Assembly: GCF_902459465.1 (NCBI RefSeq)
Contig: NW_022985694.1
Location: 1-64,000 of the forward strand
Direction of reading: 5' to 3'
Source: Asterias rubens
Taxonomy: Eukaryota
DNA: 64,000 nt
In this document: positions 1 through 43,175 of the stretch, in pieces
How the letters are laid out: the number at the start of each line of letters is the position of its first letter
How positions within the stretch are numbered: the first letter of the stretch is position 1
Notes under the pieces: model-generated
The model's input: the letters and a program-made list of their open reading frames with translations, nothing else
The model's database searches: none
Told to the model about the DNA's origin: nothing
Translations under genes and position numbers: made by a program

Positions 1-186
1 AGGGGGTACTTTAACTGCGGTGTGATCCCTAAAGGCAGTTTTTGTTTTTCAACATTTTTTCTTATTTTTTTTTCTTTACTTTATTTTTTTGGGGGGAGCC
101 CTAAAGCCACATAGTCCCTTCCCCCTAGATCCGCCAAAGGAATGCGAGATACTTGTTTTAATATCATTTTGCAAGACAATACTCAC

Positions 187-3100
187 CAGTTGTACATCAA
201 TAAAGGCTTTCATTGTTTCCTTTGGCCCAAATCTGCCACCAGTTTTCTTTTTGTCGCAGCCATCAAATATCATTGGAATGACAAAGAATGACAGGTTGAT
301 CTTCTCATCTGTTAAAAAAGAGTATGGAAATTTGAGCAAGTTATATCAACACTAGGATAATGGTCCAAAACAGTAATCATCAACCGCCTTAACTTTGCCA
401 TATTAGGATCAACTTCAATAGACCTTTATCATTGTGAGGCCATCTTGTATTTCTCCCATTGAAGTCATGTAACCAAACCGAGGCTGAAAGGACAAATAGT
501 TTGGTTCCTTTTTATATGTAAATAAATATGGGCAATCATTACTTTTATTGGATACTATGGCGCATGGCCAAAATGAATTCAGCATGATAAAGGCCTACAT
601 TCTGTGTGTCTTACCCAAGTTATCACCGTAATGAAGGAAATCATATTTACGTAAGGGAATTAGTCAATGCAGCATTTAATTGGAAATCCTCAGCCACTTC
701 AAATCTGGAGGATGTTGTCTTGAGAACACTCAAAATTATATTCTGAAAATTTACCAACTCTTCCAATGAATTAAGCAATGATCGGACAACCCGACATTCT
801 CAAAATGTGAAAAATACCTTCTGTCAGTTTCTTTACATCAGTACTGGCATCAAGACCTAACACATCCTTCCAAAGGGAAACATCTGTGTGGCATAATCTA
901 TCAGTGAGTCCGACAAGCCGCCCCATTTGTCAGTCAGTCTGTCAGCAACTTTTGGGTACATCAGCTGGAAGTCTTGCTCAATCTTAAGTAAAAGTGATTA
1001 AATGAAACATTCTTGTTGGTTGTGGAGCACTACATTGACTTCCCCAAAGCTAAATTACATGCTGACCAATATTGCAAACTCTTCAGAAACAAAGAAAATC
1101 AAAGTCAGCATTAGCTAGGACTGACTGGTTTTAAGGGTATGTAAAGCATTATGAGTACACAAAGAGTTATGAAAATGATGTATAAAACTTAACTAGTGCG
1201 AAGCAAAGACAATTAGAATTAACCAGGACTTCTGAGTGATAGCTACAGCACTACCAGGATGGTTTCAAGACTGTTATGGTAGCCTCCTAAATAATCATTA
1301 CCAAGTTTCTCACACCCCATAAATGTAATGCAGACAATATTATTCTCACTGCTTTGACAAATAAAGAGCTCGAGAAAAGAAGATATTGACTACCACAGTT
1401 TGAAATGATTTGACTTTGTAGTAACCTACCATCCCAATACCAAGCAGCCTGGGGAACTCCTCCAAGATTTCTGCAACAGTTCTCTCCCTATCTTTCACCC
1501 ATTCTGCCCTGTGCTTTGATGTCAATGACATGTACTCTTTGACTTTGGTAGTAGGTGCACAGTTGTCCTTTAGCCACTGAACCTTTGCAAGTACATCTTC
1601 GGCTGTCTCTTGCTTCTCATCGGGTTCATCAGGAGTTGCTGCACTTGCATTAACTGTTAAAAGTACAAACACATCAATATTATTATAACCTCCAGATAAA
1701 TTATATTAAATAATATCCATTCAGTCCCTTTGTATAGCGATTCATTAAATTTTGTCCTTGCTTCCATGTCCTGAACCAAGTTGGTTGGGTACTCCTGAGG
1801 CAACTCGTGAAGTTGAAAACTATGAGCACACTCTATTTATATGACATGACAATGACTTGTGCATCAGAAATACCACTTTCCTTTTTTTGTCCAGCCCCTA
1901 AAACACAAACTTCCTTGAGTGCTGTTGTTACACATTCCAAGCAAGCAATGCAAACAAGACCTGTGATAAAGAATCCTTTAGTATCTGTGGTGTAACACGG
2001 GCATGGGGCCTTCTAATTAATTTTGTTTTCTATTTATGTGGCATAGTTTTTTTGTTTTTTATGGGGCATTGGGGATTTTGTTATTTTGTTATATTTTTTT
2101 ATATTAGTTTTTGAGTTTTTGTTGTTGTCGTCGATGGTTTTTTTGTTTTTTTTTTTTTTTTTTGGGGGGGGGGGTAATAGGTCAATTACCTTGATGCTTT
2201 CCAACTTCCTCCTTCCTTCCTTGATGCTCTCCAACTTCCTCCTTCCTTATCATATTTTTCCTCACATAACGCAAGTGTTCTTCAAGATAACCACCTGCAG
2301 GGCATCCTTTGGATCCTTTAGTGTAAAAGGCTTCCTTTAGTAAAACAATGACAAAGCATATGTAAATTACACAGACAGGTCTAATTGTTTTTTCACATGC
2401 ACTGACAATTGTGACCATCCACCAGGAATGGGCTAAAAGTTGGGTTTTAGATTATTTGGCAAGTTAAGACTCCTGAAAATAAGTTTTAAAATTGTACATT
2501 GTGTGTTTGTGTTGCTTGGTGGACAGAAAATAAACGTCACCGCTTGTGACTAAATCTTGTGTTTTCTATTGTTGGACATACCTCAATATTATTATACCTA
2601 CTTTAAAGCCCATTTGTGGTGGACAGTCACAATTTGCCATACTTCATATGGAGTTGATTGTCTCATAACCTTCCAAGATGAAAGTATGTACACAAAATTT
2701 TAATAATTATTGAAATTTAATGTAGAATATATGAATATTCATAAGCTAAGTGAACCAAGTGTGCATACTATTTCCAATCTTCAGATAAAAGCTTTAATAG
2801 TCGTGGTGATGACTAGGGCCATTCAATTGTACAAGCCTCTCTGATTCGGATGGGTTGCCCTTCAATAAGGCAAACATTATACTTACATATCCTGTGATTC
2901 CTTGAGGGTCTTTCAGGCTTGGGAATGCAGCAATCACACTCTCAGCCAGAGCACTCTTTTCAAATGCACCAGGGCTGTAACATCAAAGAAAATACTTGCT
3001 TAAAACACAGCCATTTCTATAATGAGCATAAAGTGTGACATGGGAGAGGATTTAACGGAATAGTACCAACAAAATGAAGTACTTAGTACACTGCCATATA

Positions 3101-6100
3101 TTTTGGTCTGTGTTTTCAGGAATTGTATAGTAAGGACAAACATTTTGTCATCAATTTGTAGAAGGTATATGAATTAACAACATTTCAGCAAGCACATTTC
3201 AACAAACAGGAACAAGCATGTTTATGACTTATTGGCTGGCCTTGCTCATGCAAGACTTATTTTACTGTCATGAACATGTAATTTCTTTTAAACCTCATTA
3301 GTTTTTAAGTTTTGACTGCCCCAAAAACACTCTGGGTTGAGAATTTTGATTAAGCAGCATTTGAAAACTTTATTTTGTTATTTCTGTCATCCCTTTCCAG
3401 GCCATTCTGTCATTCTTGGTTACGTAAATCTAACACTTTTCAAATGACACTGTAACTTTTCAAATAAATTTATATTCTTTTCTTTTTATTTTAAAACCTT
3501 TTTGGAGCACGTATCAATCATGAACATCATTCTTGTCATTTGAACATGTTTCTCTTTTTCACAAAATTGGTGTGAAGGTTCCCATATCCATGTTGTCATT
3601 AACAAAATCCAACTTTATATTCGAATGGCCTTATAGACATGTACTTACTTTTTTCCATGATGGGAAATCAAGTAGCTCACTAATATCCTGACTAGTTGAT
3701 GCCTGACTTTTTTCGTCAAGAATCCAGATTGCTCGATGCTCCGAGTGACACTCTTTCCTTCTGGAGATTCACTAAGAATCTTCTTGGTATCCTGTTGAAC
3801 AGTGATATATATGAAGATTGGATATAATTGCTATAGTCTTTTACAGATTGGTATGCAAGGTAAACCGTTGTACACACTGAAAAAGGTGAGGAGTCCTTCA
3901 AATTTATCTTAATTGCTTTCATACATATCATTTCAAAATTGTCCCTTTCCCAAGGCCCCTATGTTTTCCCAATGGAATTCGGTCACCTTTTTAAAACTGA
4001 GAATGTCGGGGGGTTTACCCATACAAGTTGTGCATTGTCCTAAGGAAACTGTGTGTGGTAAAGATGGTAATATGTCTCTTTATACATTATGGGTAAGGAA
4101 GGGATACACAAAATATGCAAATATCAATGTTCAAGTCTACCATTGGTATACTTATAATTCCACACAACGGCATAGATGTAGGGTGATTATTCAATAATTG
4201 GGAACCCTTTCTTGTCTTCACTTTTCTTGTGCGACTTCATGAAGCTCAATCATCTTTTAGCAAAGCTGCTGTAAAACTATTAAAACAAAATCAGCAAACA
4301 ACCATTGAGCTACACACAATGAAAAACAGAAGCTCTATCTGCATAAAAATTAAAGATAATTAAGTTTAAAACAAACGTCTTACTTACAAACAAAAGTCTC
4401 TTCTGTCTTTTCATGGGTGGGGGTGACATCTGTGACAATGGAAAAAGCCCAACTGTCCGAGTCTGACAAAGAGGCTGCACTGGAAACATCCCCTGTTACT
4501 GGTGTGCCTAACACAGGTGCAACTTCACTGAAGTCCGAACTGGAACTCAGCATTGACTGACAATCAAAGAAGCCGTTTCCGGTCCAAAGTCAAGCATATC
4601 CCTTGGTAGCTGAATTGGTATTGCTGTTACCCGAGGTCCAAACTGTACAACAAACAAAAAGGGGCTAGATTAAATATAGATTACTTACTAAATTACCACT
4701 ACTCCTTCTGCCAGATGAAATTGGAATTGTCTCAAAGAAAAGCATAGAAAAGCAAAAATAACCATGCTTCTTACAGTAGTCTGTTTTATGTTTCCTAGTG
4801 AGGAAAAAAAGTAATAATAATGGTTCTGTATTAAACATACCAGTACAGTATCATCATACAAGGTTGAATGGTGTTATGATGTACCACGAAGAGTCGTCCT
4901 TACCACTGCACTTAGTTGCATGGAATGGTCTGCACACGAGAAGTTCTTTGGGCTGTTTGATGAAAACACTTTCAGACTCTTCCACAGCATAAGAGTGTCT
5001 ATGCCTGTTGTAATACTTGGTATGCCATGACCGTAGGACAAAGTAGATACTGCTCTCAACTATTATGATATGCTTTACTTGTGAGAATTGTGGCTCTTTG
5101 GCAGTCCAGTCAACCAGAATCATGCAGTTTGGTTTGTATGTATGTCTGAATGGAAACACTTCCTGACAAAATGACTTGAGCATCTTTTCCACACCCAAGG
5201 AAGGAACACACATCATTCACTTCATCCAGAGAAGAAACCAGAACAGAAATCTGATCCCTTACTTCTAATTCACTGTTCAATGGCTTCCTCAGTAAGAAAG
5301 TATAGCTTTGTTGCTGCTGATGCCTGATACTGACTGTCTTTGCAACATTCTTGTAATTGTTACAAGCTCTAGCCCACCTTTTAAAAGGTTTGTGCTTGCC
5401 CTCTTTGCGCATACTTGAGTACTGTTCCAGAGGTCCAAGAAGTTGTATTACCCGAGGGTAGTGGATTAAAAAATGCTGTTTCGGGATAAGGTGACGGTCT
5501 TGAAAGAGGCTCAGAAAGAGCCGATGATGGTCTGCAATCAAAGCTTTCAAAATGTATACGCCTGCATGGCTAATGCGTGGAGCTACTACGATTTTATATA
5601 TGTCAAGCAGCAACAGGAACATCTCCCACACATCAGATTCCTCATCTACCAAGTCACCAATGATCAAGGGAAGATACAAAGCTAAGATTCTTGTCTGTGC
5701 AGCCTTCTGACCACTTGAACCTGATGGATTCCTGAGTGCTGAATCCTGAATTATACTTGGTTTACTTTTTTTATCCGCAAACCCATAGCCAAATGAAGAA
5801 ATGCGATTGTTTACTTCTTCAAGAGTAAAACATCCTTCCAATGAGCTCACCAAGAGTAAGTTTTATTTCAAGTGGGAAAATACCCTCAAGTAAGTCATGC
5901 ATTACATCATGTTACATGATTGTCGGTGACATGGAAGCCAGTCAACTTATTCAGTTCAGAAGACCGTTTGATCCCTGTCTTTGAGACATTGTCCAACACA
6001 AGGTCCGCTTCAAAGCTGTTTTTGTCTCTTAAAAGTGACACATCTTCTACAAGTTGCTTTTTAGTGATCTCCTTTGGTGCCTTGCAAAACCGACAAGGAT

Positions 6101-7444
6101 AGTTAGCACTGAAGCTACCTACAAAACCGAGTGTTTCATGAAGCCCTAAGTTGTCACCTATCACCTGAAAAACAACTGGTCTTACCAAGCCTGAATAGGA
6201 TTGACAAGAAACTTCTATTCCCTGTCTTTCGATATCATTCAGGTCTTTCACAATCACTGATAGTATGCTGTCAATGCCATATTTGGCAACTTCAGATCTT
6301 TTTGCACACGCTGCCAATAAAATGTTACTAAGAGAAGCCTGGAACTGAGCAGGCAGACAAAGCAGACTAATATAAAGCCAGTGAGTTATTTATTCCTTTT
6401 TTAGAACCGAGGGGGTTCCCTGTTTCATAATCATCACAATACAATAGAATAGGGATGACAACATCGGCACTTGCAGAAAATTTACCCTTAAAGTAACTTC
6501 CATCGCGATAGGACTGTAACACAAGCCATCCTCACAGGGTTTTGATGAAGAATTGCAGCCATCACTCCTGGCTGCTCCAGATGTTTCCTGAGTGTTTTCT
6601 TCATGGGAACATATTGGAAGCTGTCATTTTTTACTTTCTGTTTTACTCCTCCAGTTGAGGTATCACTCTGTGATGTGAATGACTGACCCAGCACCCTTTC
6701 CTCTGGGCTGATGAAATATCCCTTATCTTTGAAGTATTTGTCCTGTTGGTACTGTGATCGAAGGCCTTCAAAGGTTTTTTTTACAACCTCACATTCTTGA
6801 AAAACTGTTTCAAATTTTGAGAGATTTGCCTCCTTGAACTGTGTTTGAACCTCTTCCACAATAGAGGAAAGCTTATGCTGTAGATGATTAGCAATGATCT
6901 CCACCAGCCCTTCAACTTCATATATGATCTGTTGCACATTGGATATGGTATAGCAGTTGCTTTCATGTTCGCTACAAAATAAGAAACTGCTTCAGCAAGG
7001 GTATCTTTGCATGTTTGTCGATCTTCATCCAAACTTTCATTATCTTGCACGTCCATTCCTTCATATCCACCACGCCATGCTCATTTTCTGATTCTTCACC
7101 TTGGGTATGTTCTTGCATGTCTGCATGCTTTGCCAATATGACGTCGATAACGATAATGAGAAAATGCCAAACAGCCATCTTGTCTACATATGACAAATGT
7201 TGATGCACCAGAATGTAAACTATGGATGTATTTTAGGTGATTGAAAAGACCCTTAATTCCCCCATGGACTTCAGATAAGCACTTGTAGCACAACATAGTT
7301 TCTTCTTACAATACTAAAAAGGCAAACAACTCACTTGCTTTTTCCACTTTGCCAAGAACTTAACTCGCAACCCAACTTTTGGAATTAGCGGTGTAATGTC
7401 CTCTTCTCTTAACAGCTCCAAGGCTTCTATATCTATTGCATTAT
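187..7444 (-). pseudogene. Mirror-image copy of the element A SAM-domain accessory gene (exons on the minus strand; last exon falls outside the window)
   Basis: Reverse complement of exons 9713-17011. The SAM exon is at 7335-7444, the EAFYTKGSKGCPAGGYLEEHLRY exon is in ORF 2182..2418, and the DEKINLSFFV exon is at 187-308. Confidence 0.85.
4854..7296 (-). pseudogene. Mirror-image copy of the element A EnSpm-type transposase, broken by several small indels
   Basis: ORFs 7096..7296, 6781..7056, 6488..6937, 5907..6317, 5110..5853 and 4854..5216 are consecutive pieces of the protein encoded from 9861. Confidence 0.93.
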
Positions 7445-8699
7445 CTGTGTGAAAAATGAATAAAACATAACTGATACTAAATTTTCTACTCAGAATGTTT
7501 TACTAGTTACAAAAATGTAAATACATTAAGAAGAGTTTTCTCAAGTGCTGGGGTTATGAAAACAGCTGAATGTTTTTGTGTACTATAACATGTCCTAGTG
7601 ATTTAATTTAATTGTTTTAATTTAGTATGAGGCACTTAAACTTAAAATTGAGCAAAATGATCATGACACACAACTGCTATACAGTGTTAGTAACTATAAT
7701 AAAACAGTGCAGTCAATAGGCCTAAGGCCTAGTAAGTCCTAAATTGTAAATGGTAAAAATTCTATCTCAAAAACACAAAGTCTCAACGACTATGTTGACG
7801 CGGCACCAGACTAACATTTTTCTAGGTAGGTGCTACAATTTTAAGTCCCAAAAGACAGTCACTGCCCATGTTCAGAAAGCCCCAGTAAAAATAACGTAAA
7901 ATATATGCTACATGTACAGTGCAAAACTGCAAGTACATGTACAAAACTACAAGAATACCAGTGCCAATATATTATACCAGTGCCAACACATCTACTGCTA
8001 AGTAAAATAGACACTACACATTAGAAAATGTAAAAACATGGACAGTTCTTTAAAAAGTTTAACTTAAAGTTGCATAAAATAGATGCCATGCAATGTTTTT
8101 TTGCCCAACCAGTAATACTTTTGCAGGAACCCTACTCAAAAGTTGGGCATGACTAAATTTGGCATGTTTAAAATAAATTCACTTAAATTTGCATAAAGAC
8201 ATGTCATGCAATGTTTTTTGCCCAACTATATTACTATTGCAGGAACCCTACTCAAAAGTTGGGCATGATGGGTTTGACAATGCCCAACCTTTATTGGAAG
8301 AAATATCCCACTCAAACATTGGGTATTACGCATATTACAATAACCCAACTAATGAAAGAAACTAGGACTTTTGCCTAAAAGTTGAACGTTAGTAGCTCTA
8401 ACATTGCTCAAAAGTTGGACAGCAAGGCTTAACTTACATGACATGAGTTATGGCAAGTTGTCTGCTGGAAATTGTAAAAAAAAAATTAAAAGCAAAAAAG
8501 CAAAACACAAAGGATGAAACCGACAAAAAATGTATGCGTTTGTTAAAAATATGGTATGGCGTTTTTTTGCTTGTTTGTTTGGTAGATATTTGGTTCAGTT
8601 GTATGTGTGTGTGTGGTTTTTTGTCGGTTTTCATCCTTTTGTTTTTGCTTTTTTGCTTTTAATTTTTTTTTTTACAATTTCCAGCAGACAACTTGCCAT

Positions 8700-9110
8700 A
8701 ACTCATGTCATGTAAGTTAAGCCTTGCTGTCCAACTTTTGAGCAATGTTAGAGCTACTAACGTTCAACTTTTAGGCAAAAGTCCTAGTTTCTTTCATTAG
8801 TTGGGTTATTGTAATATGCGTAATACCCAATGTTTGAGTGGGATATTTCTTCCAATAAAGGTTGGGCATTGTCAACACCCATCATGCCCAACTTTTGAGT
8901 AGGGTTCCTGCAATAGTAATACTAGTTGGGCAAAAAACATTGCATGACATGTCATTTATGCAAATTTAAGTTGAATTTTATTTTAAACATGCCAAATTTA
9001 GTCATGCCCAACTTTTGAGTAGGGTTCCTGCAAAAGTATTACTGGTTGGGCAAAAAACATTGCATGGCATCTATTTTATGCAACTTTAAGTTAAACTTTT
9101 TAAAGAACTG
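8700..9110 (+). repeat. Left subterminal repeats of element A (~120-bp duplicated unit, core catgcccaacttttgagtagggttcctgcaa)
   Basis: The core occurs at ~8883 and ~9003, with further ccaacttt copies at ~8730 and ~8765. Confidence 0.7.
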
Positions 9111-9712
9111 TCCATGTTTTTACATTTTCTAATGTGTAGTGTCTATTTTTACTTAGCAGTAGATGTGTTGGCACTGGTATAATATATTGGCACTGGTATT
9201 CTTGTAGTTTTTGTACATGTACTTGCAGTTTTGCACTGTACATGTAGCATATATTTTACGTTATTTTTACTGGGGCTTTCTGAACATGGGCAGTGACTGT
9301 CTTTTGGGACTTAAAAATTGTAGCACCTACCTAGAAAAATGTTAGTCTGGTGCCGCGTCAACATAGTCGTTGAGACTTTGTGTTTTTGAGATAGAATTTT
9401 TACCATTTTACAATTTAGGACTTACTAGGCCTTAGGCCTATTGACTGCACTGTTTTATTATAGTTACTAACACTGTATAGCAGTTGTGTGTCATGATCAT
9501 TTTGCTCAATTTTAAGTTTAAGTGCCTCATACTAAATTAAAACAATTAAATTAAATCACTAGGACATGTTATAGTACACAAAAACATTCAGCTGTTTTCA
9601 TAACCCCAGCACTTGAGAAAACTCTTCTTAATGTATTTACATTTTTGTAACTAGTAAAACATTCTGAGTAGAAAATTTAGTATCAGTTATGTTTTATTCA
9701 TTTTTCACACAG

Positions 9713-12700
9713 ATAATGCAATAGATATAGAAGCCTTGGAGCTGTTAAGAGAAGAGGACATTACACCGCTAATTCCAAAAGTTGGGTTGCGAGTTAAGTT
9801 CTTGGCAAAGTGGAAAAAGCAAGTGAGTTGTTTGCCTTTTTAGTATTGTAAGAAGAAACTATGTTGTGCTACAAGTGCTTATCTGAAGTCCATGGGGGAA
9901 TTAAGGGTCTTTTCAATCACCTAAAATACATCCATAGTTTACATTCTGGTGCATCAACATTTGTCATATGTAGACAAGATGGCTGTTTGGCATCATTTTC
10001 TCATTTATCGTCATATCGACGTCATATCTTGGCAAAGCATGCAGACATGCAAGAACATACCCAAGGTGAAGAATCAGAAAATGAGCATGGCGCTGGTGGA
10101 TATGAAGGAATGGACGTGCAAGATAATGAAAGTTTGGATGAAGATCGACAAACATGCAAAGATACCCTTGCTGAAGCAGTTTCTTATTTTGTAGCGAACA
10201 TGAAAGCAACTGCTATACCATATTCCAATGTGCAACAGATCATATATGAAGTTGAAGGGCTGGTGGAGATCATTGCTAATCATCTACAGCATAAGCTTTC
10301 CTCTATTGTGGAAGAGGTTCAAACACAGTTCAAGGAGGCAAATCTCTCAAAATTTGAAACAGTTTTTCAAGAATGTGAGGTTGTAAAAAAAACCTTTGAA
10401 GGCCTTCGATCACAGTACCAACAGGACAAATACTTCAAAGATAAGGGATATTTCATCAGCCCAGAGGAAAGGGTGCTGGGTCAGTCATTCACATCACAGA
10501 GTGATACCTCAACTGGAGGAGTAAAACAGAAAGTAAAAAATGACAGCTTCCAATATGTTCCCATGAAGAAAACACTCAGGAAACATCTGGAGCAGCCAGG
10601 AGTGATGGCTGCAATTCTTCATCAACAACCCTGTGAGGATGGCTTGTTGTTACAGTCCTATCGCGATGGAAGTTACTTTAAGGGTAAATTTTCTGCAAGT
10701 GCCGATGTTGTCATCCCTATTCTATTGTATTGTGATGATTATGAAACAGGGAACCCCCTCGGTTCTAAAAAAGGAATAAATAAACTCACTGGCTTTTATA
10801 TTAGTCTGCTTTGTCTGCCTGCTCAGTTCCAGGCTTCTCTTAGTAACATTTTATTGGCAGCGTGTGCAAAAAGATCTGAAGTTGCCAAATATGGCATTGA
10901 CAGCATACTATCAGTGATTGTGAAAGACCTGAATGATATCGAAAGACAGGGAATAGAAGTTTCTTGTCAATCCTATTCAGGCTTGGTAAGACCAGTTGTT
11001 TTTCAGGTGATAGGTGACAACTTAGGGCTTCATGAAACACTCGGTTTTGTAGGTAGCTTCAGTGCTAACTATCCTTGTCGGTTTTGCAAGGCACCAAAGG
11101 AGATCACTAAAAAGCAACTTGTAGAAGATGTGTCACTTTTAAGAGACAAAAACAGCTTTGAAGCGGACCTTGTGTTGGACAATGTCTCAAAGACAGGGAT
11201 CAAACGGTCTTCTGAACTGAATAAGTTGACTGGCTTCCATGTCACCGACAATCATGTAACTGATGTAATGCATGACTTACTTGAGGGTATTTTCCCACTT
11301 GAAATAAAACTTACTCTTGGTGAGCTCATTGATGAAGGATGTTTTACTCTTGAAGAAGTAAACAATCGCATTTCTTCATTTGGCTATGGGTTTGCGGATA
11401 AAAAAAGTAAACCAAGTATAATTCAGGATTCAGCACTCAGGAATCCATCAGGTTCAAGTGGTCAGAAGGCTGCACAGACAAGAATCTTAGCTTTGTATCT
11501 TCCCTTGATCATTGGTGACTTGGTAGATGAGGAATCTGATGTGTGGGAGATGTTCCTGTTGCTGCTTGACATATATAAAATCGTAGTAGCTCCACGCATT
11601 AGCCATGCAGGCGTATACATTTTGAAAGCTTTGATTGCAGACCATCATCGGCTCTTTCTGAGCCTCTTTCAAGACCGTCACCTTATCCCGAAACAGCATT
11701 TTTTAATCCACTACCCTCGGGTAATACAACTTCTTGGACCTCTGGAACAGTACTCAAGTATGCGCAAAGAGGGCAAGCACAAACCTTTTAAAAGGTGGGC
11801 TAGAGCTTGTAACAATTACAAGAATGTTGCAAAGACAGTCAGTATCAGGCATCAGCAGCAACAAAGCTATACTTTCTTACTGAGGAAGCCATTGAACAGT
11901 GAATTAGAAGTAAGGGATCAGATTTCTGTTCTGGTTTCTTCTCTGGATGAAGTGAATGTGTGTTCCTTCCTTGGGTGTGGAAAAGATGCTCAAGTCATTT
12001 TGTCAGGAAGTGTTTCCATTCAGACATACACATACAAACCAAACTGCATGATTCTGGTTGACTGGACTGCCAAAGAGCCACAATTCTCACAAGTAAAGCA
12101 TCATAATAGTTGAGAGCAGTATCTACTTTGTCCTACGGTCATGGCATACCAAGTATTACAACAGGCATAGACACTCTTATGCTGTGGAAGAGTCTGAAAG
12201 TGTTTTCATCAAACAGCCCAAAGAACTTCTCGTGTGCAGACCATTCCATGCAACTAAGTGCAGTGGTAAGGACGACTCTTCGTGGTACATCATAACACCA
12301 TTCAACCTTGTATGATGATACTGTACTGGTATGTTTAATACAGAACCATTATTATTACTTTTTTTCCTCACTAGGAAACATAAAACAGACTACTGTAAGA
12401 AGCATGGTTATTCTTTGCTTTTCTATGCTTTTCTTTGAGACAATTCCAATTTCATCTGGCAGAAGGAGTAGTGGTAATTTAGTAAGTAATCATATATTTA
12501 ATCTAGCCCCTTTTTGTATTTTGTTGTACAGTTTGGACCTCGGGTAACAGCAATACCAATTCAGCTACCAAGGGATATGCTTGACTTTGGACCGGAAACG
12601 GCTTCTTTTGATTGTCAGTCAATGCTGAGTTCCAGTTCGGACTTCAGTGAAGTTGCACCTGTGTTAGGCACACCAGTAACAGGGGATGTTTCCAGTGCAG

Positions 12701-24700: not shown

Positions 24701-27700
24701 GGTCCAATCTGCCTTTCAACTTGCTATATAGTTTTCCAGCTGGTTCTCTTCAATTTATATTTTTATATATGTATTTTCTACAACTGTGTGCTGTTTTTTA
24801 CATTTCCTACAATATTTTGCAATTACAATCAGAATACATGTACGTAACGCTTTGCCTCAATTTACCATTTTTTGTTTGCCTCTAACTACATATTTAAAAT
24901 TACTATTAGACTCATCTAGGTTTCCATGGAATAATTTTCAACTAAGTGGAAACCATTGTGTTAGACCCAACAGGATTCTATTTAGCGGGACCCAACGGGA
25001 TCCCGTTCAGCGGAACCCACATGATCTAATGGGATCCCATTTAGCAGGATCAAACGGGATCCAATTCAGTGAGACGATACGCAATCCCATTCAGCGTGGT
25101 CCAATGGGATCCCATTCAGTGAGACGCAATGGGATCCCATTCAGCGGGGTCCAATGGGATCTCATTCAGTGGGGTCCAATGGGATCTCATTCAGTGGGGT
25201 CCAATGGGATCTCATTCAGTGGGGTCCAATGGGATCCCATTCAGCGGGGTCCAATGGGATCCCATTCAGTGAGAGGCAATGGGATCCCATTCAGCGGGAT
25301 CCAATCAGCGGGGTCCAATGGGATCCCATTCAGTGAGACGCAATGGGATCCCATTCAGCGGGGTCCAATGGGATCCCATTCAGTGAGGTCCAATGGGATC
25401 CCATTCAGTGGGGTCCAATGGGATCCCATTCAGTGAGACGCAATGGGATCCCATTCAGTGGGGTCCAATGGGATCCCATTCAGTGGGGTCCAATGGGATC
25501 CCATTCAGCGGGGTCCAATGGGATCCCATTCAGTGGGGTTCAATGGAATCCCATTCAGTGGAATCCAATGGGATCCCATTCTGCAGGGTACAATGGGATC
25601 CCAGTTAGTGGGGTCCAATGGGATCCCATTCAGTAAGAGACAACGGGATCCCATTCAGCTGGTCCCAATAGGATCCCATTCTGCATGATCCAACGGGATC
25701 CCATTCAGCGGGGACTAATGGGATCCCATTCAGTGAGAGGCAATGGGATCCCATTCATCTGGTCCCAATGGGATCCCATTCTGCAGGATCCAACGGGATC
25801 CCATTCTGCAGGGTCCAATGGGATCCCAGTTAGTGGGGTCCAATCTGCCTTTCAACTTGCTATATAATTTTCCAGCTGGTTCTCTTCAATTTATATTTTT
25901 ATATATGTATTTTCTACAACTGTGCGCTGTATTTTACATTTCCTACAATATTTTGCAATTACAATCAGAATACATGTACGTAACGCTTTGCCTCAATTTA
26001 GGGATCCAGCGGGATCCAATCAGCGGGGTCCAATGGGATCCCATTCAGTGAGACGCAATGGGATCCCATTCAGCGGGGTCCAATGGGATCCCATTCAGTG
26101 AGGTCCAATGGGATTCCATTCAGTGGGGTCCAATGGGATCCCATTCAGTGAGACGCAATGGGATCCCATTCAGTGGGGTCCAATGGGATCCCATTCAGTG
26201 GGGTCCAATGGGATCCCATTCAGCGGGGTCCAATGGGATCCCATTCAGTGGGGTTCAATGGAATCCCATTCAGTGGAATCCAATGGGATCCCATTCTGCA
26301 GGGTACAATGGGATCCCAGTTAGTGGGGTCCAATGGGATCCCATTCAGTAAGAGGCAACGGGATCCCATTCAGCTGGTCCCAATAGGATCCCATTCTGCA
26401 TGATCCAACGGGATCCCATTCAGCGGGGACTAATGGGATCCCATTCAGTGAGAGGCAATGGGATCCCATTCAGCTGGTCCCAATGGGATCCCATTCTGCA
26501 GGATCCAACGGGATCCCATTCTGCAGGGTCCAATGGGATCCCAGTTAGTGGGGTCCAATCTGCCTTTCAACTTGCTATATAGTTTTCCAGCTGGTTCTCT
26601 TCAATTTATATTTTTATATATGTATTTTCTACAACTGTGTGCTGTTTTTTACATTTCCTACAATATTTTGCAATTACAATCAGAATACATGTACGTAACG
26701 CTTTGCCTCAATTTACCATTTTTTGTTTGCCTCTAACTACATATTTAAAATTAATATTAGACTCATCTAGGTTTCCATGGAATAATTTTCAACTAAGTGG
26801 AAACCATTGTGTTAGACCCAACAGGATTCTATTTAGCGGGACCCAACGGGATCCCGTTCAGCGGAACCCACATGATCTAATGGGATCCCATTTAGCAGGA
26901 TCAAACGGGATCCAATTCAGTGAGACGATACGCAATCCCATTCAGCGTGGTCCAATGGGATCCCATTCAGTGAGACGCAATGGGATCCCATTCAGCGGGG
27001 TCCAATGGGATCTCATTCAGTGGGGTCCAATGGGATCTCATTCAGTGGGGTCCAATGGGATCTCATTCAGTGGGGTCCAATGGGATCCCATTCAGCGGGG
27101 TCCAATGGGATCCCATTCAGTGAGAGGCAATGGGATCCCATTCAGCGGGATCCAATCAGCGGGGTCCAATGGGATCCCATTCAGTGAGACGCAATGGGAT
27201 CCCATTCAGCGGGGTCCAATGGGATCCCATTCAGTGAGGTCCAATGGGATCCCATTCAGTGGGGTCCAATGGGATCCCATTCAGTGAGACGCAATGGGAT
27301 CCCATTCAGTGGGGTCCAATGGGATCCCATTCAGTGGGGTCCAATGGGATCCCATTCAGCGGGGTCCAATGGGATCCCATTCAGTGGGGTTCAATGGAAT
27401 CCCATTCAGTGGAATCCAATGGGATCCCATTCTGCAGGGTACAATGGGATCCCAGTTAGTGGGGTCCAATGGGATCCCATTCAGTAAGAGACAACGGGAT
27501 CCCATTCAGCTGGTCCCAATAGGATCCCATTCTGCATGATCCAACGGGATCCCATTCAGCGGGGACTAATGGGATCCCATTCAGTGAGAGGCAATGGGAT
27601 CCCATTCAGCTGGTCCCAATGGGATCCCATTCTGCAGGATCCAACGGGATCCCATTCTGCAGGGTCCAATGGGATCCCAGTTAGTGGGGTCCAATCTGCC

Positions 27701-28823
27701 TTTCAACTTGCTATATAATTTTCCAGCTGGTTCTCTTCAATTTATATTTTTATATATGTATTTTCTACAACTGTGTGCTGTATTTTACATTTCCTACAAT
27801 ATTTTGCAATTACAATCAGAATACATGTACGTAACGCTTTGCCTCAATTTAGGGATCCAGCGGGATCCAATCAGCGGGGTCCAATGGGATCCCATTCAGT
27901 GAGACGCAATGGGATCCCATTCAGCGGGGTCCAATGGGATCCCATTCAGTGAGGTCCAATGGGATCCCATTCAGTGGGGTCCAATGGGATCCCATTCAGT
28001 GAGACGCAATGGGATCCCATTCAGTGGGGTCCAATGGGATCCCATTCAGTGGGGTCCAATGGGATCCCATTCAGCGGGGTCCAATGGGATCCCATTCAGT
28101 GGGGTTCAATGGAATCCCATTCAGTGGAATCCAATGGGATCCCATTCTGCAGGGTACAATGGGATCCCATTCTGCATGATCCAACGGGATCCCATTCAGC
28201 GGGGACTAATGGGATCCCAATCAGTGAGAGGCAATGGGATCCCATTCAGCTGGTCCCAATGGGATCCCATTCTGCAGGATCCAACGGGATCCCATTCTGC
28301 AGGGTCCAATGGGATCCCAGTTAGTGGGGTCCAATGGGATCCCATTCAGTAAGAGGCAACGGGATCCCATTCAGCTGGTCCCAATGGGATCCCATTCTGT
28401 AGGATCCAACGGGATCCCATTCAGCTGGTCCCAATAGGATCCCATTCAGCAGGTACCCAACAGGATCCCATTTAGTGGGGTCCAATGGGATCCCATTCTG
28501 CGGGATCCAACGGGATTCCATTCAGCAGGACCCAACGGGATCCCATTCAGCAGGACCCAACAGGATCCCATTCAGCAGGACCCAACGGGATCCCATTCAG
28601 CAGGATCCCATTGAAGTGGATAGTCTCAATGGAATTTTGGGAGATAGGATCCCGTTAGGTCCCATAGAATCGGATCCCGTTGGGTCCTGTTTAACGGGAT
28701 CCCGTTGGCTCACTTTCAGTTGGACCCAACGGGATCCCATTGTCCCAATTTCCAATGGGATCCAGTTCAATGGGATCCCGTTGGATCTTGTTCAACGGGA
28801 TTCAACTGGATTTTTCTCCTGGG
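21717..28823. repeat. Minisatellite of a 25-bp unit with a palindromic core (AATGGGATCCCATT plus an 11-bp variable segment), organised as higher-order repeats A (1136 bp) and B (715 bp) in the order A-A-B-A-B-A-B'
   Basis: Units such as aatgggatcccattcagtggggtcc, aatgggatcccattcagcggggtcc and aatgggatcccattcagtgagacgc. An AT-rich block (caatctgcctttcaacttgc...) recurs at ~21717, 22853, 23989, 24704, 25840, 26555 and 27691. ORF-track offsets of 1136 and 1851 confirm the periods. Confidence 0.96.
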
Positions 28824-28973
28824 GAAGTACATGTATTGTCAACGCAGCTTGGTGGTGTATCCCTGAAATGCGATAGTTGGACAGCTGTCATACATATCAG
28901 TCACAATATGCTCTTCTTAGCTACCAAAATGACCTTATTTGTTAATGTATTTTTTTACTCTTTTTTTCTCTAG

Positions 28974-30660
28974 ACAATTTTCAGCAGCAGGTTCTGCAGA
29001 AACTGCAGAAACTGGAAGATGTGCAGGCCCAGATAGTTGATATGCTGGCAAACCTGGCAAAATCATCAGCAACTACACGGGTAGGTCCTGCCGACCTGCA
29101 GGAGCCCTTATTGGAACCTGTAAAGACAATGCAGGAATTCGACGTGCTCGAAATGAGACTCGCAGAGTCAGATTTTAAGAAGAGAATGGTAAGTTTAAAA
29201 ATACTTGCATACTAACTTGGCATTATTTAACCATCCATTCAAATGATGTTTGTTTTTCCTTTTTGTCCAGCTTTAATTATATAAACCTTGAATATCCGGA
29301 GTTTTTGATTTATACATGCCTTGATTACTTAATTGCCATGTTTAAAAAAAAAAGGGAAAAGCTGCAAATTGTGCAAATGATAAATTAATATTTACTGCAT
29401 CAGGGTGACTCGGTGAGGTTTTAGTAGGAGAAACATTCATAGTACTGTATGGAAATGAGAAGGTTGACTCCTATTTTTGTGAGAATCTGCAGCATTGTAA
29501 TTGATAATGGTACTTTTAATTTCAGATCAACTACCCGAGTCTAGTCGGCGGTGCCAATATTGCCCAAACAAGTCGGCGTTTCATGAAAAAGCTGGGGTCA
29601 AATAATCTTTGGTCGGATTTCAACGTGTTTGGGCGGAAGGGGAAGCGTGGTCTGAAGTCGACCAGATTTTATCCAGTCATTGTCAGTAAGTGATCAATTA
29701 GTATGATCAATTAGCCAATTTCAATTTCACTTTTATATGTTTCTGGATTCACCTGAAGAGTTACAATGATTGGGGATCAATTGGACATTGATAGTCTCTA
29801 GCAACCTAACTACCTTACACATTTATTCAACCTGTAGTTTGTTATTGTTAACATTCTGCATTATCAAAAACTAGAATTTAAGCATATTCTTTTTATACAA
29901 TTTGTCAATTCCTTATCCCCTTCTTTGATTCTCTTTTAAAAGTACCTTATAACTATTTATTTTCTGTCTTTCAGGAGCCTGCGTAATGACACACAAGGGC
30001 GCCAAAGAGACGGAGACTGAAGAAGTCCTAGGGGACTTTCTCAAGCGAACCCCATATCTTCCAGCAGGGAGGAAATGCAAGGTAAATTTCAAAGTGCATT
30101 CAACCTTTTTTGACAAATTTTTGCTTCGACATTAACCCTAATACCATTGGGCTTTTTTGATCACATGAGTCCATTGGGGGGGGGGGGCACAATGTGCCAC
30201 CCCCCCCCCCCACGGGATTAGGGTTTTAAAAAAAAACGTATATTTCACAGTTATCTTTTAATTGAATGAGTGAAAACTCTGTAGTTACGTGTGAGTGCCC
30301 TTTGAAAGGGATGGACCCATTATCCAGCCAAAATTATCTGTAAAACAATATTGTACATGAAGCACATCATTAGTCCAGTTTTGCCCTTGTTGATGGGGGT
30401 GGCTGGATTCACCTCACTGCCACCCTAACTTATCCAGTCGTCAGTTTTTAGGTTTCGAGACTTCATATTTTTGGGATTTTATGGTATAGTTGAAATGAAC
30501 ATTTAATTTATACATAAGTGTTTGCTCTGATTTGCAGAAACCTGATACCGTTGGGGCTGGAGTTCCAGCTGTCGCTGCCGAAGATGTTGCCGAAGATGTT
30601 GCAACAGATGCTGATGTTGCAGATGCTACTGAAGACGAGGAGGGTGCCATGGATAATTGA
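28974..30660 (+). CDS. 3' exons of a DUF4806-like protein (transposon-associated accessory family); 5' exons not identified
   Basis: Phase-compatible exons 28974-29188, 29526-29685, 29975-30081 and 30538-30660 splice into an open frame: ..PVKTMQEFDVLEMRLAESDFKKRMINYPSLVGGANIAQTSRRFMKKLGSNNLWSDFNVFGRKGKRGLKSTRFYPVIVRAC..ETEEVLGDFLKRTP.. with an acidic tail and a TGA stop. The family call comes from motif recognition, not a search. Confidence 0.7.
30136..30223. mobile_element. Tiny piggyBac-like MITE remnant in an intron
   Basis: TTAA|CCCTAAT...ATTAGGG|ttttaa, with an internal G-run/gcac-aat-gtgc/C-run hairpin. The right TTAA is imperfect. Confidence 0.35.
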
Positions 30661-31730: not shown

Positions 31731-34700
31731 GTAAGAACAATTGATTTTATGTGCATTTTCCCCTGTATTTTGTTACAATAATGTAGTTGTACCTTGTAGC
31801 TCTAGTGTAGATGATTCTTCCTCCGTGACTAGTTTATATTTCTATCTTCTCCATGTTTTTTGTTTCATTTCTGATAAACTAATTCGAATTTAAAACTTGA
31901 CATTGGTGGTTATGGTGGGCCGGACTGAGCAATGACATACACTACGTACAGTTGGCTGCTTGTATAGGATGATACATATACTAAACATGTACTTTTCTTG
32001 TTTTACTGACATTTAAAATTACTTTTAAGACTTACTGAATCTGTTAATTTATCAACATGCCTGTATGATATCGTCAGTCGGATTATTGACCTCTTCATCA
32101 CACTCACATTTCACAAAATTGAACAATAACTAGGCTAAGTATAAGTGAGTTAGTTTTACTTTCACAATTATGAATATGGGTTGAATTTAAATATTTTGAG
32201 TTGTGCTTAATGACAAAGTTAAGTAAAATTAACGTGGACAATAAGTGAGTTAGTTTTACTTTCACACTTTTGTGAATATGGGTTTGAATTTAAGTATTTT
32301 GAGTTGTGCTTAATGACAAAGTTCAGTAAAGTTAATGTTGACAAAAGGTGAGTTAGTTTTACTTTCACACTGTCAAAGTGTGAAAGACAAACTAACTCAT
32401 TGGGCATTGCTCCTATAAATTATGTATTGTAATTCAATGAAGTAGTTTATTCAGTCAGAGAATAGCAATTCTGCATGTCATAATATTTTCAAAGTTTGTG
32501 TGCGCATTCCCACTGACATTTGAGCAGCAAAAAGTTTTTTTTTAATTGTTGGATCTCATGTTTCATAGAATTAGCTAGATTTTTGTAATACGTGTTCTGG
32601 TATTTCATGGTTTTGTTTTCTGCAGTACGTGGTTATGTGGAAATGTAAGGACTGCATCTTTCAAACTCGAAGGAAGTCAACATTATATAAACACTACAAG
32701 CTTCAGCACGGTCATTATGGTCCAAGTAATCCCCAACCATGTTTGTACAATGACTGTCCATGCAGATTTAAAACAAGTGCAGCCTTACAAACACATATGT
32801 CGAGATATCACTTGCAAGATGAATGTATTCAAAAACCCAATTGCTTTTAAATGTCATGTGTGTGAGAAGAATGATATTACCACAGAAAAAACATTCTTTG
32901 ACCATTTACATAAACATTTAAAGAATAATGAAACTGTTGTTTGTGCGTTTCACGGTTGTAGTTTTACAACAAATGTGAGTGGCACATTCAGATCCCATAA
33001 GAGTAGAACACACACACCACACACTCTGGCAGACTTCAAAATTAAGATTGTACAGCATCCAGGATGCCACACTGATGTTGATTCACAAGACACATGCTTT
33101 CCCAGAGAGTTACATGTAGAAGATGTTAAAGAAGGTGAAGACTTGTATGCAGAAGACAATTCTGAAGACCTTCATGTAAATCGATCCACACAAGCCATTG
33201 AACGAACATTTGCAGCGCTTTTACTAAAACTGGAGAACATACTTCATGTATCAAGTAAAGCAGTTGACGAGTTGGTCACTGAGTTGGAATTTATTATCAC
33301 CTCTGTTTCTACGCTTGACATACAAGGCATACTCGAAGAAACCTTGAAAAAACATAACTGTAATATTGACAAAGCTGTCATTGAAGAATTAGCAAATTCA
33401 GTTAATGCGACTAATCCCATCATCACGGCAATTGGAAAGGATGGTCCTCTTGCAACTGCATATAAAAGGAAAGAGTATTATAGAAAACACTTCAGTGTTG
33501 TACAGCCTGTTGAATACATACTCAATGCAAAGGAAAACATTACCTATCAGTATGTTCCGATTCTGCAATCATTGCAACAAGTACTAAATGTAAATGAAAT
33601 CCTCGATAAAGTGCTGAATATTGATGAAAGTGGACAAAATGAAGCTGTTGATGATATGCCACAATATAAATCATTTCGGGATGGAAATTTCTTCAAAGAA
33701 AATAGGCTTTTGTCTGGAGAAGAGTTTCAAATTTTTGTTGGCCTTTATGTAGATGATTTTGAAGTGTGTAATCCCCTGGGCACGTCAAAAAAGAAACACA
33801 AAGTTTGTGCAGTGTATTGGGTCTTGTCAGATTTGCCACTCAAGTACCGTTCTTCTTTGACTTCAATTAATCTAGCCGTTTTGTGTAAAAGTGTCGATGT
33901 GAAGAAGTATGGATTCAGTCAAGTTTTGGAACCACTTATAAAGGATCTTGTCACCTTAGAAACAAATGGTGTCTTTATTTCAAAATTGGGAAAACATATA
34001 AAGGGCACTGTTCAGTGTGTGGCAGCAGACAATCTAGGAGCCCATAGTCTTGCCGGATTTGTTGAAAGCTTTTCTGGTCATTATGTCTGCAGATTTTGCA
34101 CAGGAAAACACAGTGACTTTCAGTCGAAGGAAGTTAGATCTGGTGCCTTCCAGTTGCGAACTAAAGGAGAGCATTCTGAACATGTTAAAACTTCACTGGA
34201 GGATGAAGCCATGAACAATTGCTATGGAGTAAAACGTGACTGTGCCTTGACTAAAAAACTCAGTAACTTCCATGTCTTGACAGGCTATCCTCCTGATGTA
34301 TTACACGATATTTTTGAAGGAATTGTTCCAGTTGAACTTGCACGCTGCCTCCGTGTACTTATCTCCAAGAACTACTTCACACTTGATGAACTGAATGATG
34401 TGATCAAGCACTTCCCCTACAAATGGGCTGATAAAAGAAACTCTCCACAGCTTATTCCTGACAAATTTTTAACCACAATCCATGGTAACGCACATGAGAA
34501 CTGGGCCTTGCTAAGATTACTTCCTTTTTTTGTTGGAACTAGGATACCCCATGGGGAGCCAGCATGGGAGATCTTAATGGATTTGAAAGATATAGTTGAA
34601 CTAGTTGTGGCACCTGTTCACACTGAAGAATCCATTGCATTTCTAGATTGCAAAATTTCTGAGCACCGCCAGAAATTTCAAGTAGTTTTCCCTGATGTAA

Positions 34701-35692
34701 AATTGATTCCCAAACATCACTTCATTGAACACTATCCCCAACTGATTCGCTCATGGGGTCCTCTTGTGGCTTTGTGGACAATGCGATATGAAGCCAAACA
34801 CAGCTTTTTTAAGCAAGTTGCCCGCTACACAAATTGCTTCAAGAACAGATTGTTGTCACTTGCAGTAAAGCATCAGTTTATGTTATCACACCACTTCAAT
34901 TCTTCATGGACCACCAAAACTGCTATAGAAGTGTCTAACGTCTCAAATGTACCCTTAGTTGTGTTAAGGGATGATATCAAACGGGTTGTAAAACAGAAAC
35001 ATCCTCAACTGAGAACCGTACCTCTATCAAAGAGGGCATCCTACTATGGAACAAACTATGTAGTTGGAATGATTCTTACTACAGGGTCTACTGCAGGTCT
35101 CCCAGACTTTGTTGAAATTGTCCATCTTATAATTCTGCAAGATAACCTTAGCTTTGTTGTCAGGAGGCTGAGTGCATGGTACACAGAACACCTCAGATCA
35201 TTTGAGTTAGTATCATCTGTAAATGAACTTGATGTTTTGGACATCAATGAATTGACTGACTACTACCCTTTGGTATCATATACAGTTGGAGGGAAGTGTA
35301 TGGTAACTCTGAAGAGATACAATCCAACAAGCTAATTATTATAGGTACAGTGTAACTAAACAGACAAAATGTGTACATATTTTACTATAGCATGTACAGG
35401 TATAAAAAGATCCATTGTGGATGGTTTTGTTTATGACTGCATAGTTTTACTGTGCCACTCATCTCTGCATATTGGACAATAATTATTCTGGAAATTAAGA
35501 CACTTTTAGATAAAGTATAGGTGATTTTAAAACTAAATTGTTGAGCTTTTCCTTAACAAAAATAACAAAATGGGTGAAGGCAATCAGGAGAAAGTTTAAC
35601 ACATTGAAAAGCCTGCTTTGTGTCATTGCCCCTCAGTTATAACTTTTGAAAGATACACATGTATTTATGGGGTTTTTTTGGGTTTGTTTCAG
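31731..35692 (+). promoter_or_regulatory. Putative alternative intron of element B: donor at 31731 with alternative acceptors at 32625 (transposase) and 35692 (accessory gene)
   Basis: Donor ctcagtcaag|gtaaga; acceptors ttttgttttctgcag|tacgtggttATG and ggtttgtttcag|actcaatcagcATG. Each acceptor lies 9-11 nt upstream of an ATG. Confidence 0.5.
32635..35335 (+). CDS. EnSpm/CACTA-type DDE transposase of element B with several N-terminal C2H2 zinc fingers (~900 aa; one +1 frameshift near 32835)
   Basis: MWKCKDC..H..LQH and CLYNDC..HMSRYH (ORF 32629) join KCHVC..HLHKH and CAFHGC..HKSRTH (ORF 32717). Core motifs LYVDDFEVCNPLG, AADNLGAH..GF.ESF..HYVCRFC, DVLHDIFEG and WTMRYEAKH. Confidence 0.92.
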
Positions 35693-35703
35693 ACTCAATC
35701 AGC

Positions 35704-42200: not shown

Positions 42201-43175
42201 ATGGCAGATGCACTTGTTGAACCATCGTGCATAATGTTGAGAGTCATCATCACCGAAGGAAACATCCAGAAGCTGATTCTACCCCCCTGGGCTGGAAAGT
42301 GTGCAGGATTTGAAGAACCAAGTCAAGGAGAGGTTTGAACTCAAAGGGGAATTCAGTCTCCAATTCATTGATCCGGACTTTGATAATTTCATGAGCTTAT
42401 CATCACTCAAGGATATTAAAGACAGGGGAACTATCAAAGTCGTTCCACTTTCTATTCCTGATTCAGATTCAGACACAGACATTGACAGTCAGTGTGTTTG
42501 ATCCTTTGAGTAATTCATCTCTGCTGTCATCGTCACCGTCGATGTCGGAAGCATCATCCATGTCTACTGCTGTAAGTACATGTAGTACAGATAGAGCACT
42601 TCAGTGGCCTACCGTCTTTCCAATCCCATCCTTCTCAATCGACACAGAGATGAAACTTTCAAACGGGAAAAAAACAGTTTGAGAAGGATGGAATTTTGAC
42701 AAACCCCACAGGAATGAAATCTGATATTTTGGAAAAACTTGCCGAAGCCATGTTAAGCTACAAGGCCTATCCATCAGATGATCAGTTCTGCTCTGTAGCA
42801 CAAGCATTTGTCAAGAAGCACCCATACCTGAAAGAACCAGGTGCTGCCACTGGCTATAACTTGGTTGGAAAATAAACCTTAAACTCAAGATGGGTAACTA
42901 TAGATCAGAATTGCAAAATCACGGATGCACAGAACTAACTGTAAAATCACTCTAAATCAGCCAAGAACATAAAAAAAACCAAGAAAGGCAGAAGGCAGAA
43001 GTTAACTACCTCCCTGAATATCCTGGTGATGAAACAGCTGCAAGCTCTGAAAAGGAACTGACTGCTCTTCTTGATTAATTGAAGAAAACACAATGGAAAA
43101 GTGATTATGGAAACACTGGCAAAGACATTTTTCCCACCGCAGACAAGAAGTAGTTCTTCAAAAACCATATGTTGT
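42201..43175 (+). pseudogene. Degraded, 3'-truncated paralogue of the element B PB1-like/SAMD3-like accessory gene
   Basis: After an acceptor at 42191 it reads MADALVEPSCIMLRVII..QDLKNQVKERFELKGEFSLQFIDPDFDNFMSL..QWPTVFPIPSFS..AYPSDDQFCSVAQAFVKKHPYLKEPG..KMGNYRSEL, with several frameshifts and stops. Confidence 0.85.

Follow-up and report, generated by a model that had tools for sequence, protein, structure and literature searches.

A probable CMC transposon of the sea star Asterias rubens with its transposase gene nested in an intron of a SAM-domain accessory gene

When a transposase gene lies within an intron of another gene on the same strand, the question arises whether the two genes share a transcript, so that the choice of splicing decides which protein is made. 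This question is raised by a locus, here denoted element A, in a stretch of 64,000 nucleotides of the Asterias rubens genome (contig NW_022985694.1, positions 1 to 64,000; hereafter, the window), where a transposase open reading frame (ORF) is enclosed by exons of an accessory gene that encodes a SAM domain. In maize En/Spm, a transposase-specific ORF is housed in an early tnpA intron, whose removal by splicing yields the accessory mRNA (PMC1636069 on Masson et al. 1989; PMC4158355). For element A, the anatomy of the nested element by itself leaves little room for doubt. The best explanation as a whole, namely, a CMC (CACTA-Mirage-Chapaev) transposon with nested genes and a splice switch in a single transcript that sets the ratio of the two proteins, is one that we favor with some reserve; taken on its own, the single-transcript switch seems to us evenly balanced.

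The core of element A consists of the following features:

9713–9822, + strand: SAM exon b, second half of the SAM domain, with the phase-0 donor CAA/GTGAGT; a homologous exon is found in loci L002–L006 and L009 (listed below)
9823–12531, + strand: accessory-gene intron that holds the entire transposase ORF; the same intron is annotated in Acanthaster planci, Asterias amurensis, and Strongylocentrotus purpuratus
9841–9843, + strand: in-frame TAG that stops read-through from the SAM exon
9861–12315, + strand: transposase ORF, with an N-terminal C2H2-like zinc finger and a DDE core (D292, D386, E475, C406xxC409)
12532–12789, + strand: accessory exon 3, in phase 0 at either end, encoding a Ser-rich linker of low complexity that includes a nuclear-localisation-like KRQKR motif

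Both splice sites named in an earlier note on this DNA, the phase-0 donor (9822/gtgagt) and the phase-0 acceptor before 12532, are confirmed in the sequence. The exon at 9713–9822, translated as (x)NAIDIEALELLREEDITPLIPKVGLRVKFLAKWKKQ, holds only the second half of the SAM domain, the first half being expected in a short upstream exon; the exon at 12532 (FGPRV...) starts in phase 0 and is preceded by ttttgtattttgttgtacag, a long pyrimidine tract that makes a strong acceptor. The transposase ORF occupies 91% of the intervening 2709 nt, and its ATG (9861) comes 38 nt beyond the donor. The note had also proposed a second acceptor, 17 nt 5′ of this ATG. The AG ending at 9843 does exist (it is that of the in-frame TAG), but the tract before it (cctttttag) holds five T rather than six, and L003 and L005 have no acceptor in this place; as a family trait, this acceptor is rejected. 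A leader spliced to an acceptor just before the ATG is nevertheless conceivable for element A because element B, the second transposase of the window, has a strong acceptor 9 nt before its own ATG.

Is this arrangement an accident of one locus? The survey of relatives that the note called for recovered the same order (SAM exon b, transposase, accessory exons) in sea stars, a sea urchin, and a holothurian-like contig, that is, in eight loci besides the window, making nine loci in at least five species:

L002: sea-star contig from ENA; 66% amino acid (aa) identity
L003: Asterias amurensis; 60% aa identity
L004: Acanthaster planci; 48% aa identity
L005: Logan contig; 56% aa identity
L006–L008: Strongylocentrotus purpuratus, three copies; 35–43% aa identity
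L009: holothurian-like Logan contig (SRR27871386), positions 1–4488; 34% aa identity

The same-strand nesting of the transposase ORF in an intron of the SAM accessory gene is thus real, and its recurrence in eight further loci excludes chance. Six of the loci were compared base by base. In all six, the donor of SAM exon b is in phase 0 and reads GT(A/G)AGT or GTAGGA, an in-frame stop follows within 3–6 codons past the donor, and the transposase ATG lies 18–53 nt past the donor and 2–41 nt past the stop; an acceptor-like tract before the ATG is not present in all of them. The most distant locus, L009, has its transposase ATG ~90–95 nt after the SAM exon, at the head of an 835-aa ORF, and its accessory body is a single intronless ORF of 445 aa that starts 11 nt past the transposase stop. 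Every downstream accessory intron is gone from this contig, and the transposase-containing intron is kept; the contig is either a compact genomic variant or partly processed RNA.

Do both genes belong to the transposon? The repeats and ends of element A, as far as they are present in the window, are as follows:

8882–9099, + strand: two 98-nt direct repeats inside intron a, with TTGGGCAA / GCCCAAC motifs (motif positions 8926 and 9046)
19656–20030, + strand: 75-nt tandem subterminal repeats with ACCAAT..TGGTGGG motifs
20131–20264, + strand: 3′ subterminal block and 3′ terminal inverted repeat (...GTTGGGTAAAAAGTTGGGTAATTTTTACCC T10 ACAGTG), followed by TA (20265–20266)

A 3′ block of 110 nt is common to the window, L002, and L003 (75–78% DNA identity) and ends in ...ACAGTG, after which the flanks diverge. 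The reverse complement of this 3′ end matches the 5′ end of L003 (CACTGTAAAAATATTGGGTAA, 20/21), 357 nt upstream of exon a. L003 is an 11.6-kb element with CACTG-type ends at 8494 and 20115 (CACTGTAAAAA..TTGGGTAA) and TA flanks; the end of L002 is CACTGTTA, with the flanks CA / TG. The three S. purpuratus copies occupy different chromosomes, share 99.87% identity across 15.86 kb, and have sharp ends (TA/CACTC...GTGTG/TA), with terminal repeats that start CACTC / CACAC and arrays of ~67-nt repeats at both ends. A search for the 5′ inverted repeat of the window's own copy found none; it is expected near 8450, beyond the fold-back in the assembly described below. The motif TTGGGYAA occurs four times in 20133–20239 (107 nt) and twice in 8926–9053; over the whole window it is not enriched (14 occurrences versus 9.6 expected), and only its local clustering is meaningful. 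Because the inverted ends enclose the SAM exons as well as the transposase, both genes belong to the transposon.

The CAC-type ends, subterminal repeats, and DDE transposase together place the element in the CMC superfamily, and element A is probably a young autonomous CMC (EnSpm-like) DNA transposon of ~11.5–12 kb. The 3-bp target-site duplication of EnSpm proper was not found; TA stands on both sides of the three urchin copies and L003, which fits either a 2-bp TA duplication or TA as the outermost bases of the repeats. Such 2-bp flanks make the element a poor fit to EnSpm proper and agree with those of the Mirage branch. Directly after the 3′ end of element A, a tandem repeat of ~390–400 nt begins (two units, 88–94% identical; window 20265–20970).

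How far can the assembled sequence be trusted? The left part of the window is occupied by one further feature:

1–8539, no strand assigned: mirror-image copy of 8640–17197; the inverted arms are 98–100% identical and reach window position 1

Window 1–8511 is the reverse complement of 8638–17197, forming a near-perfect 17-kb palindrome with a fold-back boundary at ~8540. Between the two arms there are 73 small indels, most of them located in short homopolymers, and essentially zero true substitutions, a pattern that points to uncorrected long-read error rather than to divergence of paralogues. A contig assembled from Illumina DNA reads (run X3) tracks the window leftward from 8911, departs from it at 8540, and goes on into 90 nt absent from the window. 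The left ~8.5 kb is most likely a fold-back misassembly rather than a second element. The copy at 5070–7296 is ruled out as a real paralogue, given that the arms differ by indels only and that the Illumina contig departs at 8540, and the true 5′ end of element A is lost from the window through this misassembly. Many indel errors of 1–3 nt are present on both arms. The right arm is well supported by independent data: L001, a JGI contig from this locus, matches 8896–14911 at 99.8% (6027 nt), 9004–12686 is matched by the Illumina X3 contig with 0 substitutions across 3689 nt, and at least 90% of the words of the right-arm region are present in 15 DNA runs. Artefacts are confined to the mirror copy and the indels. 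Without the independent contigs, this copy of element A would appear dead and duplicated. Over window 8700–14400, contigs from the RNA libraries X16 and X19 are 95–99% identical to the window and those from X18 100%, a divergence that suggests a second allele, population, or sister species with the same element.

The correction of these indels bears directly on the transposase. In the window, its ORF stops at 12113 and continues in another frame (12100–12312), with an ATG lost behind 11955 and an AT behind 12099; these bases are present in L001, in the mirror arm, and in the Illumina X3 contig. The real transposase ORF is intact and intronless, at 819 aa, and the breaks in the window are assembly indels. 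Five intact ORFs of 818–828 aa were found (four sea-star loci and L005), and many relatives of about 810–835 aa exist. D292, D386, E475, C406, C409, and H471 are invariant in an alignment of 17 transposase sequences. Searched against Pfam, the window transposase and the single exons gave no useful match, and a PDB sequence search with the transposase returned noise only. A relative that is 31% identical (P0104) passes the Pfam threshold for Plavaka over the DDE core (31.5 bits against a cut-off of 26.3; profile positions 52–317 of 325), a likeness to the Plavaka branch that the window protein itself, without a Pfam match, does not display; Plavaka was defined in fungi. Transposase_21 was matched by two relatives at E ~1e-3.

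The remainder of the accessory gene is laid out as follows:

8830–8860, + strand: candidate for exon a, tentatively supplying the start codon and the first SAM helix (MFEWDISSNK); it is in phase 1 and has the weak donor GTTGGG
13391–13533, + strand: accessory exon 4
14212–14299, + strand: accessory exon 5, beginning of the most conserved block, FPxLKDP..GY
14849–14991, + strand: accessory exon 6; 2 nt are lost here (apparent frameshift), and the mirror arm (2190–2334) is in frame
15533–15756, + strand: accessory exon 7
16208–16373, + strand: accessory exon 8
16890–17011, + strand: accessory exon 9
17565–17900, + strand: last accessory exon, stop TGA at 17898–17900; 54–55% identical to the last exons of L002 and L003

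Counting the tentative exon a, the gene has ~10 exons and encodes ~540 aa, which comprise the SAM domain, a disordered linker, and a 390-aa body. Candidate exon a was located solely by position and phase, in both of which it agrees with exon a of L003 (8851–8908), L002, and L004; the similarity is weak (EW..S..K), and tblastx of 8540–9720 against the other loci gave no match at E <= 1e-3. Still inside element A and 500 nt downstream of the original, 18276–18400 repeats, at 92% identity, the final 85 nt of accessory coding sequence together with the start of the 3′ untranslated region.

What kind of protein does this gene encode? Fold analysis and profile searches were performed with the database proteins P0121 (A. 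planci) and P0124 (S. purpuratus). The N-terminus of P0121 adopts a five-helix SAM fold (Z 9.1–8.1, rmsd 1.8–3.4 A, 60–66 residues), with structural matches to the SAM domains of EphA2, tankyrase, BICC1, and Scm (Foldseek TM 0.7–0.8) and the closest resemblance to the polymerising SAMs of tankyrase, BICC1, and ANKS3; SAM exon b of the window aligns to the second half of this domain. In Pfam, the accessory protein yields a weak match to SAM_1 alone (E 3.6e-4, below the cut-off). The 396-aa body (P0121 residues 140–535) is modelled confidently (pLDDT 91, pTM 0.88), and its fold matched nothing in PDB above noise (best Z 5.2); matches to three-helix folds (capicua C1, homeodomains; Z 3.8–4.8) are too weak to count as evidence. 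The profile search for the accessory family retrieved 2709 cluster representatives. Names were taken from the best 150 of these matches, and the ~30 clusters so named come from crinoids, brittle stars, urchins, sea cucumbers, sea stars, many teleosts, insects, and a springtail, often in multiple copies. All are called 'uncharacterized'; the label 'SAMD3-like', which the earlier note had attached to the protein, appears on none of these ~30 clusters and is not sustained.

Given this anatomy, how might the two proteins be produced? Under the explanation that we favor, one promoter near the 5′ end of the element would drive a single pre-mRNA. Splicing from the 9822 donor to the 12532 acceptor would remove the transposase ORF and give the accessory mRNA; with the intron retained, the SAM frame would stop 3–6 codons past the donor, the transposase AUG would follow 2–41 nt later, and a little transposase could be made from this RNA, whether through reinitiation or through leaky scanning. 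Some elements might instead express transposase through a leader whose splice acceptor lies directly ahead of the AUG. On this view, the accessory-to-transposase ratio would depend on splice choice, as in maize En/Spm. The accessory protein, to judge from its modelled fold and the arrangement of other CMC elements, may oligomerise via the SAM domain and act at the subterminal TTGGGYAA repeats. A single pre-mRNA with a splice switch is favored because the spacing of donor, stop, and ATG is conserved and because the intron is kept in L009; both arguments are indirect. Splicing across the transposase also appears in the NCBI models of A. planci, A. amurensis, and S. purpuratus, which join the SAM exon to the exon past the transposase: A. 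planci isoform X1 (P0121, 535 aa) has the junction ...GWRRE/FQQDK... (intron 2273–5278 of L004), a 530-aa gene model of A. amurensis spans a separately annotated 825-aa transposase gene, and the S. purpuratus model P0124 splices out the intron 9072–12399 of L006.

Several observations weigh against this explanation. These gene models, the sole support for splicing, are predictions. In the contigs of three metatranscriptomic libraries, no joint of 9822 to 12532 was found; all contigs are colinear with the DNA, and they cross, unspliced, both the 9822 donor (9727–9956, 9493–9850, 9392–9888) and the 12532 acceptor (12449–12599, 12472–12700, 12428–12720). Their depth is low (2–8), other splice sites are likewise crossed unspliced, and other introns are covered; the contigs may represent DNA carry-over or unspliced RNA and neither show nor exclude a switch. 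The window lacks the element's 5′ end, near which the shared promoter would lie, and the donor of candidate exon a is weak. The three urchin copies share a frameshift (L006 10256–10284) that splits the transposase into ORFs of 399 and 469 aa; either these copies were moved in trans or the frame is recoded. Finally, element B has its accessory ORFs downstream of the transposase, unsplit, so the wider family also includes members that are not nested; nesting would be a trait of the SAM-type clade only. The earlier note's interpretation is upheld in part: the nested layout is real, and the models from other species have the junction, for which the contigs of the three RNA libraries, all unspliced, give no support.

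The main rival explanation is that there are two independent transcription units, with a transposase promoter in intron a or exon b and no splice choice to set dose. It would account for RNA contigs over the transposase that are unspliced and continuous with exon b, and it agrees with the annotation of the A. amurensis transposase as a separate gene by NCBI and with element B, where an acceptor 9 nt before the ATG and the lack of an upstream accessory exon indicate that transposase expression in the wider family does not need nesting. The donor-to-ATG distance of 18–53 nt in six loci that are 34–66% identical argues against it, since a core promoter would not fit into so short a gap behind exon b, as does the retention of this one intron in L009 after the loss of all other accessory introns; we consider independent units unlikely, although by no means negligible. 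Very unlikely, in our judgment, is a scheme in which the functional second product is a SAM-transposase fusion, acting as a truncated regulator or a SAM-tethered nuclease, with the long accessory protein being secondary. The fusion has a model in A. planci isoform X2 (P0018, 515 aa), where the SAM exons are joined to an acceptor inside the transposase ORF, so that ...GWRRE runs in frame into VVGDNLGLHE, which holds the second catalytic D, and transposase and accessory parts are merged in the urchin P0079 and Holothuria P0020 models. Each of these is a single computed model, a product that runs from the second D onward would lack the first catalytic D, and the accessory body is strongly conserved by itself (2709 cluster representatives). 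The fused transposase-accessory gene models P0079, P0020, and P0016 (895–1226 aa; S. purpuratus and Holothuria leucospilota) may have arisen as errors of prediction, or they may reflect genuine read-through or splicing.

There are two further rivals. A transposon that carried only the transposase could have landed by chance in an intron of a host SAM gene, as the intronless ORF filling the intron might indicate. However, inverted ends are absent inside the intron, where just 38 nt precede the ATG; the arrangement is repeated in nine loci of at least five species; the inverted ends enclose the SAM exons; and both genes are present in each of three urchin copies, which lie at unrelated sites. 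A host gene struck by a transposon is accordingly rejected on conservation and on the inverted ends around both genes, and we hold it to be extremely improbable. That the whole feature is an assembly artefact has a chance close to nil: the region does lie inside the 17-kb fold-back palindrome and contains numerous indel errors, but for the right arm this account is contradicted by the JGI and Illumina contigs that reproduce it and by the 15 DNA runs.

Compared with maize En/Spm, the nested element has in common CAC-type inverted ends, subterminal repeat arrays, two proteins, and a transposase located in an early accessory intron. It differs in that the transposase is one intronless ORF, in contrast to ORF1 plus ORF2 of En/Spm; the intron in question is the second and parts the coding SAM domain from the rest, whereas that of En/Spm follows a non-coding leader; the flanks are 2-bp TA instead of a 3-bp duplication; and alternative splicing is, for element A, a prediction from layout and gene models. 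The earlier view of the accessory protein as a TnpA analogue holds for position but not for homology, as no similarity to TnpA was detected.

An En/Spm-like switch would not be the first in an animal. SmTRC1 of Schistosoma mansoni was reported in 2006 to be alternatively spliced into several transcripts, with a shorter, more abundant one lacking the transposase domain, and its authors noted the parallel to Spm (DeMarco et al. 2006; PMC1636069). Element A resembles SmTRC1 and the animal TRC relatives of CACTA in being an animal element with a Transposase_21-type enzyme; unlike element A, SmTRC1 has ends with a CCC core, and neither a SAM domain in its products nor the precise nesting, with the donor 18–53 nt before the transposase ATG, has been described there. 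In the P element of Drosophila, the production of active transposase depends on whether one intron is retained or spliced out (PMC4158355). The retained P intron truncates the same protein, whereas here the intron contains the entire transposase and splicing gives a different protein. A literature search for a SAM-domain transposon partner, for SAMD3 in connection with transposons, and for this nesting found no relevant paper. The En/Spm arrangement and the animal splicing precedent are thus known, and the SAM partner and the precise nesting are the parts for which no paper was found.

The window holds other repetitive sequence. Element B, a second CMC transposase (32629–36818; transposase 32635–35335), is 31% identical, has an N-terminal frame break near 32717 and a strong acceptor 9 nt before its ATG, and is not accompanied by a SAM exon. 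Downstream lie a 133-aa ORF without a Pfam match (35659–36060) and 244 aa homologous to the accessory core (36084–36818). A third, fragmentary accessory copy of the element-B type, with three short ORFs, occupies 42301–42875; no transposase was detected alongside. A GC-rich (47–51%) satellite of 25-nt units, in about 180–200 copies, spans 21718–29000; its higher-order blocks recur at intervals of 1136 and 715 nt, which add up to 1851 nt.

A broader reading would combine three propositions, and we regard the combination as improbable, if worth stating. It would posit a widespread, unnamed animal CMC clade (echinoderms, teleosts, insects) that has a polymerising SAM partner with a 390-aa body lacking a solved relative; an invariant micro-architecture of donor, stop, and AUG in its SAM-type members that would couple splicing to translation, such that unspliced RNA would give a little transposase by reinitiation and spliced RNA the partner; and vertebrate SAMD3, with the same length and the same N-terminal SAM, which might be a domesticated copy.

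If one pre-mRNA does give both proteins, element A would be a clear animal counterpart of the dose control of En/Spm, with an unusually compact and conserved junction. The accessory family is large, multi-copy, and unnamed, and recognition of its transposon origin would aid the annotation of thousands of 'uncharacterized' animal proteins.

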